Source: Octopus sinensis (lineage: Eukaryota). Taken from it: a stretch of 64,000 nucleotides of DNA. The stretch spans positions 75,082,001 through 75,146,000 of the forward strand of contig NC_042999.1 of the NCBI RefSeq assembly GCF_006345805.1, given 5' to 3'. A model generated the notes under the pieces. That model saw nothing but the letters and a program-made list of their open reading frames with translations. It ran no database searches and was not told the origin of the DNA. The translations under genes and the position numbers were made by a program. Shown here piece after piece: positions 35,728-59,926 of the stretch. The first letter of the stretch is position 1; the number at the start of each line of letters is the position of its first letter.

Positions 35728-35956
35728 ATGTCAACAATAGAAAATGAAGAAAACATGAAAGATTCTGAAGAAGTGAAAAAAGAAATAGAAAGTAATGTTC
35801 TGCAACTTTTCGGCAATGACGGTGAACCTATGCGTGTTTATCGATATAAAGGACATAATGTTTTTTATACAGAACTGGCATTGTCAGCATTATCCAAACT
35901 AAATACAATGAAAATTAGACCTGATGATATATTACTATATAGCTATCCTGGAGCAG
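35728..35956 (+). CDS. Cytosolic sulfotransferase-like gene A, coding exon 1
   Basis: ATG at 35728. ...MKIRPDDILLYSYPGAG, then G|gtaag donor. Matches the SULT 'RPDDxxxxxYPKSG' region. Confidence 0.93.
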
Positions 35957-36559
35957 GTAAGATTTTAAAGTGATATAGTGTATCAGCGATTGGATTATGT
36001 AATAACAAATTTTCTTAAAGCGTAATATGTAATTTGAGGGTAATGTGATTTCTTTTACTAATTTAAAATACAAAGCTAAGTTTAATTTATTTCAATATTG
36101 TAACCAAAATATTTTTATTAGATATATAATGAAACATATATAAGTATTTAAATGCATTTATGCAAGTACATAATCAAATATAGTTTTAATGATATCCTCG
36201 TGTTGCATTCGGGGCTAGCATTTCTGGGCAGCTGCTGATCAGATGTGTGATATCTCCCGAAAAAATGTGACGTAATTTACATTTTAGGTTGCATCTCTAA
36301 ATGTTTAAGTACTGTGTAGCAATATCCTGTTGTTGGATTGTAAATTCTTGGATTGTAAATTGCGTTCGAAGTGTGGTGTGAGGTATCAGTCACGAGTCCA
36401 AGAGAGACTGCACTTTATGTTGATATTACTGCCTGCTGGAAACATACCCAAGAATAATCACTTTTTCGACTGGTTGGTCGGTTGGCTGGTTAGTTGGTTG
36501 GTTGGTATGTATATATGTATGCATGCATGTATGTATGTGTATAAGCATGCATGCAGTAC

Positions 36560-37560
36560 AACCTGTCGAATGGTCAGGCCGTCGACGAGTAAACCGGCTA
36601 ATCTACCGAGCCTGCTTGGTGTGAGAGACTCCTAGTCTTTGCTAAGATATCTCTCTCTATAGGAAAATCCCGAAATATCACCCGTCACATTGTGTAGTTC
36701 TTGCCCATGCTTTTTTCTGGTCTACTTGACTTTTTAGGGAGAGTTTAGCGGTGTTGTGCAAACTGTTATTGACTTGTTGCTGACAGTCGTTGTCTTTAAC
36801 ATCAAGGATAACATAATTTGTCAGTGATGGTCATACTTGTCTACGAGCTGACAGCTGGCCCCTAACAAAGCGACAAGATTTTTTAGTTAAGAGAGTACTC
36901 AGTGTTTGTAAATATGTGGATGAGTTGGTGCATTGGTAGAACAGTCAATGCACACAATCAAGTGTGTGCATCTATTGAACTAAAGAATCTCAGAAGGAAA
37001 ATCTTTGGAATCTCTTTACAAATTACAAATAGATTGGATTTGAAGAACTTGAGTCAGTTTCTTTTGCTATTTCTTCGCAACAAAACAGTATTTCTAGAGT
37101 TTTATGTAAATTTGTAGGTACATAGCCTAATGTACCTATGATATGTACAAATGTTGCAAATTTTGCATTAGTTCACCATTTGTTGGACTTTTGACCATGT
37201 ATTCACATCTGCTGGGCAGCTGAACTCTGCAACTGTGCGTGGCGTTTGTTCCTTACTGTTTCTGTTGGAGTGTTTCTCCAGTATTCTTTATTTTTAAAGG
37301 TGTGAATACATTCCAGTTCTAGCATGCCCTTGATGTATACGTCAGGCAATCCTTCCTGCCGATGGCATGGTAAATAAATTTTGCCACTATATCATGCTCC
37401 AGATACAGGAAGTATATCGCAGACATTTTGGGACAACTGCTGAGCGATATGGATGATACCTTCCACACTGCTGCAGCATAAACGACATTTTCTATCACAA
37501 TGTAGAAGATTGGTCGTGTCTTTGTCTCTCTTGTTTATCATGTGCTTGGTATCTATTTCC
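36560..37560 (-). mobile_element. Possible internally deleted R2/NeSL-like LINE remnant
   Basis: Weak zinc-finger/Myb-like N-terminal and RLE-like C-terminal traces on the minus strand. Confidence 0.35.
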
Positions 37561-38807
37561 TATTTCTAAATACCAAAGGCATATCACAAATCCAGGAGAG
37601 GTTATTTTTCATCTCAATGCTGCTATCCTCTTGATCACGAGATATGTATGTATGTATGTATGTATGTATGTATGTATGTATGTATGTATGTATGTATGTA
37701 TGTATGTATGTATGTATGTACGTGCATATGTATGTACGTACGTACGTACGTATGTATGTATCAAATAGGTGTCTTATAAAACTATTCCGCACATCCTATA
37801 ACAGCCATACCAACAATCTAACATACCTCCATCATCAGCTGTTCCACAGATATCACTATGGTTTCGACAGCTATGCAGCATGTATGTATGCATGCAATTT
37901 TATACAATATATATGCTTAAAACCCATTGCAATCTTGCTGGATTGTTTCTCTTTCTTATTCAAGCGAAGGATAGCAGTTAAATAAATCGATTCCAATAGT
38001 ATAGTTATCGATTCGTAACTGGAAGCTGACATCAGTGTAATTCTAATGCAAAATATAAAAACATCTGAATAATTATTGTAGCTTATTTATCGATTGGATT
38101 TTATGAATGTGTTAATTTTCTATACTCATAAAATTCGTATAGAACAAACTTATAAATTAAACTCCTGATAGTAAGTGGTTTCTTATTGTACCAGTGTGTA
38201 ATCACATTTTTCCTATGAGTACATTTTAATCTCTTGATTACAACTGTAAGTAAAGTAAAGTTCCTTCCCGAGTCATATAAACTCAAAAGGCTGGTTTTCT
38301 TGGCGTATATATTCTCCACCTGAATGGGACGTCGGTCCGTTGCAGGATTTCTCATTTTTTTGCTAGCTGAGTGGACTGGAGCAACATGAAATGAAGTGTT
38401 TTGCTCAAGATCACACGCGCCCCTCGGTCCAGGAATCGAAATCACAATCTTATGATCACGAATCTAACACGCTGACCACTAAGCCACAGCTATAAGTTGT
38501 TTAGGATCTTTTCTGTTTGGCTGCCAAGCGAGCAGAGATTGAAAATTGGCAGCTAAACAGAAAAGATCCAAAGTTTATGATAAATATTTTACTATTTCAC
38601 ACACATCATTAATAATCATGGTGAGTTTATAATGTAGATGAAAAAGATAGTAAAATACGTGTGTAAAACATTCCCAACATTGAAATAGAACTCACTAACT
38701 GTAGATCAATAACTCTTTAATTGTGCACCAGGTACTGTTTCTAATTATTGTACTTGATCCAGGACAGATTTTCCTTTATGTCATTTATGCATTATTTATG
38801 ATTTCAG

Positions 38808-39125
38808 GATCACATTGGATGTTTGAAGTCGTTAATATGATATTGAAAGAAAATAGTGAAAGAGTACCCATGATAAAAGAAGAGATGGTATTAGATTATG
38901 CCCCAGTAGAAAATCTCGATTCAGCTGAATCACCTCGACTATTGAATACACATCTTTCTATTGATTTCTTGCCACCGGAATTGCTAAAAGATCATAAAAT
39001 TATCTATCTAAACCGCAACCCTAAAGCTATACTGGTGACCTACTACAGACATTTGCTTGCTGGTAAATCTTTTGAATATAACGGAAATTTTTCTAGCTTT
39101 TTTGACCTTTTTATGAAAGGAGAAG
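38808..39125 (+). CDS. SULT-like gene A exon 2
   Basis: atttcag acceptor, G|gtaag donor. SHWMFEVV...SPRLLNTHL...IIYLNRNPKAILVTYYRH. Confidence 0.95.
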
Positions 39126-39929
39126 GTAAGGATTGAAAGTCTACTACTACTACTACTACTACTACTACTACTACTACTACTCTGTTATTGGGTGTAAAAT
39201 GTAAGAGAAGTGCCTGTAATTATTTAAGTATTACAGCCCGGCCGACGGCTAAATTATGCATTAACTGATAAAACAAAGTCTTGTTATTTTTTCATAATTT
39301 CCTAAATTAAGGGCATTACTGGCATACTTTACAAATGCCATTATTTCTTTAGTTTATCCAATTAGTAAGGCCTAGTAAAATGACTAACATTTATTGAGCT
39401 TCAGAAGAAGTAGTGTACTATAATTTGTTTCTAATACGTGTATGACTGAGCTGCCAATTGCTGACTTCGCTGATGAAATATACTCTAACTACCCACGACC
39501 GTACCACTTTGGAACATCTAATATATATTTTATCCTCTCGAAGACTGGATCATGATTTGAAGATTTCCAGAAGCTCGAACGACTACATAAACCTCTTGTT
39601 GCTGGGGTATTGGTAGGGATGGTGGCCTTCTTTGAATCATCAAATACTTTTTGAAGTGGTAACATTTTAATTATGCAAAACACGGTTGTTTCAATGGAAG
39701 TATAATATCTATACAAACGACATATTTATATTACTTCGACATTCGTTTTAATGTATGTTATTAACAGTTCTCTACTAGTTGTTACACATTTACCTGTTGA
39801 GCTCTCTACATAACAGTGGCATTTAATAGTCAGTATTTCGTGTAGATACACACACACACATGTATGCATGTATGCATATATATATATATATATATATATA
39901 TATATATATATATATATATATATATTATA

Positions 39930-58469: not shown

Positions 58470-58552
58470 GTAAGATTTGAAAGCATCCTACTACTACTAC
58501 TACTACTACTACTACTACTACTAATAATAATAATAATAATAATAATAATAAT

Positions 58553-59245
58553 AAGGGATGCTCCAAGGGCTCATACGGCTGTAAAGATCAGCTACTAATC
58601 AATAAGGCCATAACTGAAGACAGCCGCAGAAACAAAAGGGGTCTAAGTATGGCCTGGATCGATTATCGAAAGGCTTTTAATAGTATTCCCCACACATGGA
58701 TCCTAGAAACGTAGCATCAATAATCCTAAAATATATAAAACATTCCACGAATAAACGGCAGACAGTGCTATAGCTCCAGACAAAAGAGGCACTAAAAATC
58801 CAGAGCCATCCCCATTAGAAGAGGAATATTCCAGAGAGACACGCTCTCTTCACTCCTTTTCTGCTTGGCACTGATACATTTACCTGACATGCTAAACAGA
58901 AACTGGGTGGGGATACAACTGTTATGGCAAAACAATCAACCATCTCTTATATATGGATGATCTAAAACTGTACGTCAGAAATGATAAACAGCTGGAAACA
59001 TTACTAGAGACAGTACATAGATTTATCGAAGAAATAAACATGATTTTTGGCTTAGAAGAATGTGCCAAAGCAACCTTGAAAAGAAGAAAACTAGTTAAGA
59101 GTAGCAACATCACACTACATAAAGCAAATGAAATAAGAGAATTAGACCAAAGCCAGATATACAAATACTTAGCAATCAATGAACTAGATACGATACAACA
59201 CACACAAATGAAAGAAGATAATAAAAAAAAGGAATACTAAAGACA
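58553..59245 (+). mobile_element. R4/Dong-like RT fragment in SULT-B intron 2
   Basis: GCSKGSYGCKDQLLIN...WIDYRKAFNSIPH...NHLLYMDDLKLY. Begins directly after (TAA)n. Confidence 0.85.
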
Positions 59246-59352
59246 GGGCTAGATTTGTTTTGGTTAATTTTACGTTAATTAGGAGGTGTTTGTTATTCTA
59301 TCAGTTTTTATTTGACAATCTCATATTCTAATTTATTTTCTTAATTTTTCAG

Positions 59353-59450
59353 TTCCTTATGATAGTTACTTTAAACATGTTCAGGAATTTTATGCCCTAA
59401 TTAAAGATAATCCAAATGCACTTATCATTACTTACGAAGAAATGAAAAAG
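59353..59450 (+). CDS. SULT-like gene B exon 3
   Basis: 98 nt, same length as in gene A. PYDSYFKHVQEFYALIKDNPNALIITYEEMKK. Confidence 0.93.
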
Positions 59451-59745
59451 GTAAATTTTTTATATTTCTGTGTAATTTTCATCTGAATTTCAATATATCT
59501 TATTTAGTGCACTGGTTTTTGATGTACAGGAAAAAGATCTATAATATTATTACGATATATCTGATTTGCTTAACGTACATATTCATCCAATTAATCTTTG
59601 TTCTAAATCGTCTTATCTTTTTAATGACAGGAGTTTAACTACATATTAACCTCATATTAACCACAGAAAGAGGTCTTTAGTAAGAAAATGCAATCTTTCT
59701 GTTAAATATGAAAAAAATTCATAATTCGTTATTTCTTTTCGACAG

Positions 59746-59926
59746 GATTTATACAAAGTAGTGTTGCATATTGCTAAGTTCCTTGATAAAACAATTTCTG
59801 ACCAACTTGCTAAAAGTATTGTTGATATGTGTTCATTCGATAAGATGAAATCTGAGAAAACATTGGTGTCTGCCTCATGTGTTCCTGAAAACTTATTCAA
59901 AGAGGGTGGTACTTTCTACCATTCTG
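59746..59926 (+). CDS. SULT-like gene B exon 4 (exon 5 not found in window)
   Basis: gacag acceptor, G|gtaagt donor. DLYKVVLHIAKFLDK...CSFDKMK...TFYHS. The equivalent intron in gene A is 4.85 kb, so exon 5 may lie past 64000. Confidence 0.93.

Follow-up and report, generated by a model that had tools for sequence, protein, structure and literature searches.

This report concerns a 64,000-nucleotide stretch of the Octopus sinensis genome (hereafter, the window; chromosome CM016861.1, 174.4 Mb, approximately positions 75,082,001-75,146,000; 36% G+C), in which two tandem genes of the cytosolic sulfotransferase (SULT) type, here termed A and B, carry an altered binding site for 3′-phosphoadenosine 5′-phosphosulfate (PAPS). 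Exon sets were located by tblastn with a human SULT1A1 query, whose match to PDB chains was judged by eye, and two co-linear sets were found, both on the + strand. Gene A is complete and comprises five exons with GT-AG introns throughout; its 309-aa product matches P0001, annotated at NCBI as 'sulfotransferase 1A2-like [Octopus sinensis]', at 100% identity. Gene B has four exons within the window, again with every intron GT-AG, and the 277 residues encoded there are all identical to P0004 (NCBI 'sulfotransferase 1C2 [Octopus sinensis]'), the complete 312-aa protein of this gene, which continues ...FYHSGKVDTWKKWF.... The fifth exon of B was absent from 59927-64000 by tblastn and blastn and was found beyond the window. 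The coordinates, frames, splice sites and peptide strings given for A and B in a preliminary description, made from the letters of the stretch alone, all proved right when compared with the gene models and NCBI proteins, and the open frames and clean splice sites that it reported correspond to intact gene models with GT-AG introns in two species. The features of the two genes are listed below (slashes mark splice junctions here and in the text).

35728-35956, + strand: exon 1 of gene A; ATG at 35728, from M1 to the first base of G77; donor GCAG/gtaag
35941-35955, + strand: SYPGA of gene A, in exon 1; Gly75, the equivalent of Lys48, at 35950-35952
38808-39125, + strand: exon 2 of gene A; SHW at 38810-38818 and the catalytic His125 (NTHL) at 38951-38953
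39014-39028, + strand: RNPKA of gene A, in exon 2, which also encodes Thr154 (the Ser138 equivalent)
42085-42182, + strand: exon 3 of gene A; VPWDDYF...TYENMKE, with the Tyr193 equivalent inside
42492-42669, + strand: exon 4 of gene A; CSFDKMK (Phe229 equivalent), variable loop 3, and YHS plus the first base of Gly275
42663-42665 and 42666-42668, + strand: His273 and Ser274 of gene A, in exon 4
47524-47630, + strand: exon 5 of gene A; (G)KVDTWKKWLTVEQSE...FNF and stop, with the altered GxxGxxK motif (GKVDTWK) and the KTVE motif
54908-55142, + strand: exon 1 of gene B; ATG at 54908, THPGA at 55127-55141, Gly at the Lys48 position at 55136-55138
58152-58469, + strand: exon 2 of gene B; SHW at 58154-58162, catalytic His (NTHL) at 58295-58297, RNPKA at 58358-58372; donor AAA/gtaag
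59353-59450, + strand: exon 3 of gene B; IPYDSYF...TYEEMKK
59746-59926, + strand: exon 4 of gene B; ends ...TFYHS plus the first base of Gly, with YHS at 59917-59925
~64239-64345 (window-equivalent), + strand: exon 5 of gene B, ~240 bp beyond the window; in the chromosome, gene B terminates 345 bp after the last letter of the window

Read along the protein, the motif strings of A are SYPGAG/SHW (interrupted by intron 1), NTHL, RNPKA, YENMK, SFDKMK and YHSG/KVDTWK, and those of B are THPGAG/SHW, NTHL and RNPKA, with YHS immediately before the splice site. Both proteins match Pfam PF00685 (Sulfotransfer_1), A with E = 6.9e-49 (167 bits) and B with E = 7.7e-45, against a curated cut-off of 22 bits. 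The closest solved structures by sequence are SULT1A2, SULT1C2 and SULT1A1 (E ~1e-36), and in gap-free HMMER alignments to the chains of these three proteins Gly stands opposite Lys48 and HSG..DT opposite RKG..GD. The AlphaFold2 model of A has a predicted local distance difference test score (pLDDT) of 86.8 and a predicted template modelling score of 0.87, and its best Foldseek matches are SULT1B1, SULT1A1 and SULT1E1 (3CKL, 1LS6 and 1AQU), with template modelling scores of 0.78-0.86 and root-mean-square deviations of ~2.4-2.6 Å. A and B are SULT-fold proteins, and the canonical fold is predicted for them.

The two genes belong to a larger family. A word-indexed search yielded 19 proteins, all octopod (O. 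sinensis, O. bimaculoides, O. vulgaris, Argonauta hians and one octopus transcript), and all full-length proteins among them carry P(G/A)(A/T)G(S/A)HW, RNPK(A/S) and YH(S/T/N)Gxx(D/A)TWKKW. The variant is common to 14/14 core proteins from four octopod species and dates at least to the Octopus-Argonauta ancestor, which agrees with the earlier suggestion that the changes are older than the A/B duplication. Judged by these sequences, the clade to which A and B belong, both as intact genes, is an expansion of cytosolic-sulfotransferase-fold proteins restricted to octopods. On a single O. sinensis chromosome (CM016861.1), seven distinct full-length members were found, and the four that were located form at least three sub-clusters, at 75.12-75.146 (A and B), 85.29-85.34 and 156.47-156.51 Mb; the five-exon structure is common to every copy examined. 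The O. bimaculoides orthologues of A and B are likewise adjacent. The pair of tandem paralogues noticed at first is therefore real, but the family to which it belongs is far larger and older. The search for orthologues in squid, cuttlefish or Nautilus gave no named decapodiform protein that belongs to the clade.

Two local observations were made at these clusters. Downstream of the B orthologue in O. bimaculoides (L001, 22329-22521), there is a fragment similar to exon 2 from a third paralogue; its alignment is spread over two overlapping frames, which suggests a frameshift, and it is possibly part of a pseudogene. In O. sinensis, the genes called in the 10 kb after B include no equivalent of this third copy. 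At 85.31-85.34 Mb in O. sinensis (L006), a second set of the 3′ exons of P0013, with tblastn scores identical to those of the first, lies ~18 kb upstream, which indicates that the second sub-cluster underwent a very recent local duplication.

In cytosolic sulfotransferases, TYPKSGT, YxxRNxxDxxVS and GxxGxxK are the 5′-phosphate, 3′-phosphate and nucleotide motifs for PAPS (10.1101/2021.09.08.459372). For these motifs, an exhaustive HMMER profile search gave 9,407 relatives among 1.84 billion representatives, and 279 of the nearest SULT domains were aligned to SULT1A1 numbering, which is used below, for position counts. Of these 279 domains, 242 have K or R at position 48, 254 have R at 257, 238 have K at 258, 234 have G at 262, 225 have D at 263 and 253 have D at 134; save for a few fragmentary or odd models, the exceptions at these positions are octopod proteins.

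In the core family, the 5′-phosphosulfate loop TYPKSGT has become (S/T)(Y/H)P(G/A)(A/T)G(S/A), with G at position 48 in 10/14 proteins and A in 4/14. The 3′-phosphate motif RNxxDxxVS has become RNPK(A/S)xxV(S/T), in which Asp134 is replaced by Ala or Ser in 14/14 proteins, while Arg130 (14/14) and Ser/Thr138 are kept. RKGxxGDWK(N) has become H(S/T/N)Gxx(D/A)TWKK with the loop length unchanged; here His257, Gly259, Thr263 and Lys266 each occur in 14/14 proteins, Asp262 in 13/14 and Ser258 in 12/14. The changes first noticed in A and B, namely Lys48→Gly, Arg257→His, Lys258→Ser, RNPKA and, in A, Gly262→Asp, were all recovered in the gene models and alignments.

The 14 core proteins were also contrasted with 222 canonical relatives, and sites fixed in the family and rare in the canonical proteins were sought. 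Only five such family-specific sites were found, Thr51→Ser, Arg257→His, Gly262→Asp, Asp263→Thr and Asn266→Lys, and three more, Lys48→Gly/Ala, Lys258→Ser and Asp134→Ala/Ser, lie slightly under the threshold of the contrast. The family-specific fixed changes all fall in PAPS phosphate-binding motifs, and none of the canonically invariant sites has turned variable in the core family. His257, Asp262 and Thr263 are each found in 0% of the canonical relatives. It had been considered at the outset that the PGAG/HSG variant might be widespread in active SULTs; it occurs in none of the 222 canonical relatives and in none of the solved SULTs matched. Two further candidates, Lys106→Asn and Thr52→His, were rejected as extra departures: Asn106 (158/279) and His52 (187/279) are majority states among invertebrate relatives, and NTHL and (T/S)HW are for this reason not departures.

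Altered loops were also met in two multidomain proteins. P0070 is a two-domain SULT protein whose first domain has SYPGAGASW and a degenerate 3′-phosphate loop and whose second domain is canonical; the first domain may be an independent occurrence of the PGAG loop. P0038, a Logan transcript of 889 aa, has three tandem SULT-like domains and a degenerate 3′-phosphate loop. In its domain aligned to SULT1A1, Lys48 is replaced by Met and His108 by Gln, and its other two repeats read FPNSGHEC/IRTEQ and FPMSGHEW/IRTEQ (here the slash separates two motifs). It is a different SULT derivative, more thoroughly 'dead-looking' than the octopod family.

With regard to the features that remain, A and B both have the catalytic base His108 (in NTHL), a residue that does not vary within the family and that 277/279 relatives share. 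Pro47, Gly50, Trp53, His108, Arg130, Lys133, Tyr193, Phe229, Gly259, Trp264 and Lys265 are invariant or nearly so in the core proteins, which thereby retain the adenine-stacking residues Trp53 and Phe229. His108, Arg130, Ser/Thr138 and Trp53, initially listed as retained in the two genes, are invariant or kept across the family, and the motifs listed as YExMK and SFxxMK are YENMK and SFDKMK in A. The KxxxTVxxxE (KTVE) motif, which is the dimerisation motif of cytosolic SULTs, is kept as well, as KKWLTVEQSE in A and KKWFTVEQSE in B (P0004).

Variability within the family is lowest in the remodelled cofactor site and highest in the acceptor loops. Across the core family, mean entropy is 0.33 bits at 24 cofactor/motif positions, compared with 0.88 bits for random site sets (P < 1e-4), and 1.58 bits in the three acceptor/gating loops (P < 1e-4). 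The ratio of nonsynonymous to synonymous substitution rates (dN/dS) was computed by the Nei-Gojobori method. Between A and B it is 0.47 over the whole protein (dS 0.44), 1.00 in the acceptor loops (32 codons) and 0.33 in the rest of the protein (186 codons); the comparison of the two paralogues that the preliminary description had proposed gave an overall value below 1. Between O. sinensis and O. bimaculoides, dN/dS for A is 0.49 (95% confidence interval (CI) 0.26-1.01), and the A and B orthologue pairs pooled give 0.58 (95% CI 0.37-0.94). The new site is held by purifying selection. That the changes had been kept by selection was suggested earlier for A and B, and both the invariance or near-invariance of the altered positions and the pooled ratio bear this out. 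In addition, the core member P0007 is represented by a 1,213-nt intronless contig in SRR3401912, an octopus metatranscriptome (PMC11662614), which shows transcription and correct splicing for one core gene at the least.

The nearest relatives of the core family, which are octopod wherever the taxon is known, also do without Lys48 and are less altered. Their states are as follows.

P0028 type (Argonauta and three Octopus species, with O. sinensis XP_029658400; on another chromosome): 48 = A/S, RNPKD, RKGQVGDWK
P0025 (Argonauta): 48 = Y, RNPKD, RTGKVATWK
P0020/P0022 (O. bimaculoides XP_014790789 and Argonauta): 48 = T, RNPKA/S, RSGKxSTWK, with Arg257 still present
Core family: 48 = G/A, RNPKA/S, HSGKVDTWK

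In a neighbor-joining tree, the P0028 type, P0025, P0020/P0022 and the core family are successive branches, and canonical proteins of Lingula and Macrostomum fall outside the octopod lineages. When the motif columns were left out, the core family was recovered with 98% bootstrap support and the core family plus the P0020 group with 84%. The branching suggests an order of changes in which Lys48 would have been lost first, followed by changes at Lys258/Gly262/Asp263, then at Asp134, and finally by Arg257→His together with 262→Asp, the deeper part of this order being moderately supported. Two transcript proteins, P0283 and P0284, share 67-71% identity with the P0028 type and combine A/S at position 48 with the canonical RKG..GDWK; one of them was found in at least 20 RNA-seq contigs. 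The sulfotransferase BBB86724 of Watasenia scintillans (P0036) is canonical (SYMKSGCHW, YRKGVVGDWK), from which it follows that cephalopods as a group have SULTs with Lys48.

In sulfuryl transfer, the Lys of the 5′-phosphosulfate-binding (PSB) loop stabilises the leaving group, as reported for mutants of mouse estrogen sulfotransferase, and to our knowledge a basic residue in this loop is universal in PAPS-dependent sulfotransferases. Efficient PAPS-dependent sulfuryl transfer is unlikely for the A/B family, since three basic phosphate contacts have been lost and an Asp gained. The pattern points to a new, selected function and not to decay; simple decay is largely refuted because the new state is invariant and the catalytic His, the adenine pocket and Arg130/Ser138 are retained. 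The reading that we prefer, and to which we would give an even chance, is that the remodelled nucleotide pocket has a selected function, most likely in a dimeric small-molecule binder, alternatively in an enzyme with a less anionic donor or ligand. In such a scheme, all three PAPS phosphate-binding motifs would have been remodelled in steps, starting with the loss of Lys48, and the remodelled site would then have been frozen by purifying selection, with the acceptor-pocket loops diverging fast between paralogues. The remodelled nucleotide pocket would be used together with the diversifying small-molecule pocket, and the product would be a non-catalytic dimeric binder (a pseudo-enzyme or a ligandin-like protein) or an enzyme with a less anionic ligand.

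Several points weigh against this reading. The invariant catalytic His, Arg130, Ser138 and whole adenine pocket would be expected of an active enzyme too, and His273, Lys276 and the new Lys282 could partly stand in for the lost basic contacts. The model of A is weak only at residues 250-280 (pLDDT 57-62), which form the cap and the 3′-phosphate loops, so the altered 3′-phosphate loop has no reliable geometry in it. The two deeper nodes of the tree are moderately supported (58% and 66%, motif columns removed). For B, dN/dS between O. sinensis and O. bimaculoides is 0.67 with a 95% CI of 0.38-1.46, which is not significantly below 1. Expression evidence was not found for A or B themselves, the contig evidence being that of P0007.

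Another reading is that these are ordinary PAPS-dependent sulfotransferases whose rewired site is compensated, for example by His52, Lys260 or Lys266, and that the family would be a lineage-specific detoxification or hormone-conjugating expansion. It would accord with the invariance of His108, Trp53, Arg130, Ser/Thr138, Tyr193, Phe229 and Gly259, and a conserved cofactor site combined with hypervariable acceptor loops is typical of real SULT expansions; furthermore, the P0028 lineage has lost Lys48 only, is conserved in other transcriptomes (67-71% identity) and is represented by the at least 20 RNA-seq contigs mentioned above. However, a basic residue is present at position 48 in 242/279 relatives and in every solved SULT matched, and exchange of the PSB-loop Lys for Ala abolishes activity in a plant cytosolic sulfotransferase (10.1101/2021.09.08.459372). 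His52 and Lys260 are common in canonical relatives that keep Lys48 and are therefore not family-specific compensations, and three positive charges have been lost while Asp262 has been gained. We consider compensated sulfonation unlikely, if still to be taken seriously. When a family-specific compensating basic residue was looked for, only Asn266→Lys was found to have been gained, Lys260 and His52 being present in canonical relatives too.

It is rather improbable that the proteins are enzymes using a donor or cofactor without a 3′-phosphate, such as adenosine 5′-phosphosulfate (APS) or another adenine nucleotide, or a less anionic ligand. Most of the fixed changes do lie in the 3′-phosphate motifs (Asp134, Arg257, Lys258, Gly262 and Asp263), the adenine pocket and the catalytic His are kept, and the invariance of the new loop sequence suggests selection for a new contact set. 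On the other hand, Arg130 and Ser/Thr138, which also bind the 3′-phosphate, are both retained, and Lys48 contacts the 5′-phosphosulfate; since APS carries this group as well, a change of donor leaves the loss of Lys48 unexplained. We know of no SULT-fold enzyme with a donor lacking the 3′-phosphate.

Recruitment as bulk structural or storage proteins, in the manner of crystallins, was brought up in the preliminary description by analogy with the cephalopod S- and omega-crystallins, which are a precedent for enzyme recruitment and the sole support for such a role here. The analogy did not hold up: a family of at least seven paralogues, spread over three clusters and diverging fast in the acceptor loops, is unlike a bulk structural protein, the old active site is strictly constrained, and no reports of abundant SULT-like proteins in octopus tissues were found in the literature, so a crystallin-like role would be very improbable. 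That the genes are decaying or non-functional duplicates is the least credible reading, for which the fairly high orthologue dN/dS (0.49 for A and 0.67 for B, with the CI of B spanning 1) and the exon-2 fragment with a broken frame that a third copy has left downstream of the O. bimaculoides B gene may be cited, but against which stand intact open reading frames and GT-AG introns throughout in two species, a dN/dS of 0.33 outside the acceptor loops, motif sites invariant over 14 proteins, orthologues kept since at least the Octopus-Argonauta ancestor and the transcription of one core member (P0007). A and B were for the same reasons, namely their intact frames, GT-AG introns, low ratio outside the acceptor loops and invariant motif sites, not regarded as pseudogenes.

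To return to a selected function of the remodelled pocket, we tentatively propose, as a possibility that is somewhat doubtful in its full form, that octopods have a multi-gene SULT-fold family which may have acquired a new, selected ligand or cofactor specificity at the old PAPS site through the four steps given above. If this is true, the family would represent either new enzymatic chemistry on the SULT scaffold or a small-molecule carrier or sensor family with diversifying pockets, and a natural case of a pseudo-enzyme going through loss of catalysis to a new function. It is an expanded, conserved animal clade without the PSB Lys and the 3′-loop Arg/Lys, yet the new site is strongly constrained. 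The intermediates (P0028, P0025 and P0020 types) persist in living octopods, and the clade suits two questions, that of other uses of the SULT fold and that of the stepwise origin of pseudo-enzymes. The octopod genes carry the automatic names SULT1A2-like, 1C2 and 1E1, and the rewired site is new to the literature found, in which there was no paper on the site, on the octopod expansion or on its expression. In the O. bimaculoides optic-gland transcriptome, a 'Sulfotransferase 1C2', without an identifier, was given as a steroid-conjugating enzyme (10.1101/340984). Functional readings based on sulfation and derived from automatic SULT names may be wrong for the octopod clade.

Some other features of the window were also recorded. 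Within 1-30429 (+) lie exons of a large gene upstream of A; they end at ~30429, and the 2,040-aa product of this gene contains SRCR, MAM, LDL-receptor-A, Trypsin and Nudel domains and looks like an enteropeptidase- or nudel-like mosaic serine protease. Inverted arms of ~1.09 kb, 97.5% identical (1476-2563 and 4276-5360), surround a 1.7-kb core, and this element (1476-5360) resembles foldback elements, or DNA transposons whose terminal inverted repeats are long. A 384-aa open reading frame at 22311-23465 (+) has a CCHC-type knuckle, CYKCGLRGHIRAFC, and a Lys/Glu-rich tail; it gave no Pfam match and is probably a gag-like retroelement remnant within the territory of the upstream gene. Between A and B, a 273-aa open reading frame at 50336-51157 (+) has a weak zf-RVT match (E = 4.5e-4, under the Pfam cut-off) and is likely the C-terminal remnant of a non-LTR (long terminal repeat) retrotransposon reverse transcriptase, and a tandem array at 51921-52237 has a 65-bp unit (130-bp higher-order) in ~4.9 copies with 76-82% matches. 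A 1.3-kb dispersed repeat occurs at 2565-3840 (+) and 52797-54105 (-) with 92.8% identity, and its inverted copy sits ~800 bp upstream of the start codon of gene B. A (CTA)n microsatellite lies ~15-17 nt past the exon-2 donor in both A (39141-39181) and B (58487-58521) and, being common to the two genes, is older than their duplication. An Rfam scan of the window gave no match.

Among known systems, the canonical SULT1 proteins (PDB 1LS6, 4GRA, 3CKL and 1AQU; PF00685) have the same domain and predicted fold as the octopod family and share with it the catalytic His, the adenine pocket, Arg130/Ser138, KTVE and the length of the 3′-phosphate loop. The octopod family differs from them by Lys48→Gly/Ala, Arg257→His, Lys258→Ser, Gly262-Asp263→Asp-Thr, Asp134→Ala/Ser and Asn266→Lys, states that are all absent from the 222 canonical relatives. 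The Watasenia protein BBB86724 is, like the octopod proteins, a cephalopod cytosolic SULT of similar length, but it keeps Lys48 and RKG and is not the sister of the octopod clade. The P0028, P0025 and P0020-P0022 lineages resemble the core family in doing without Lys48 and differ from it in their intermediate states.

SULT4A1 (PDB 1ZD1) has a conserved SULT fold, an atypical site for 3′-phosphoadenosine 5′-phosphate (PAP) and, as far as demonstrated, no classical activity. It is marked by Trp53→Leu and by a PAP-binding loop that is shortened and lacks Lys, and it shows that small changes at the PAP site can abolish PAP binding (PMC1847840). The comparison with SULT4A1 drawn in the preliminary description is apt in the sense of an 'orphan SULT', but the defining lesions, Trp53→Leu and the shortened loop, are absent here. 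Orthology to SULT4A1 was rejected on the same grounds and because the sequence match to 1ZD1 (E = 5e-27) is weaker than that to SULT1A2 (6.5e-37). SULT4A1 keeps the PSB Lys, whereas the octopod family loses Lys48, Arg257 and Lys258; the octopod family keeps Trp53, which is invariant, and the loop length, with no indel relative to canonical relatives, whereas SULT4A1 keeps neither; and SULT4A1 is single-copy, whereas the octopod family is expanded.

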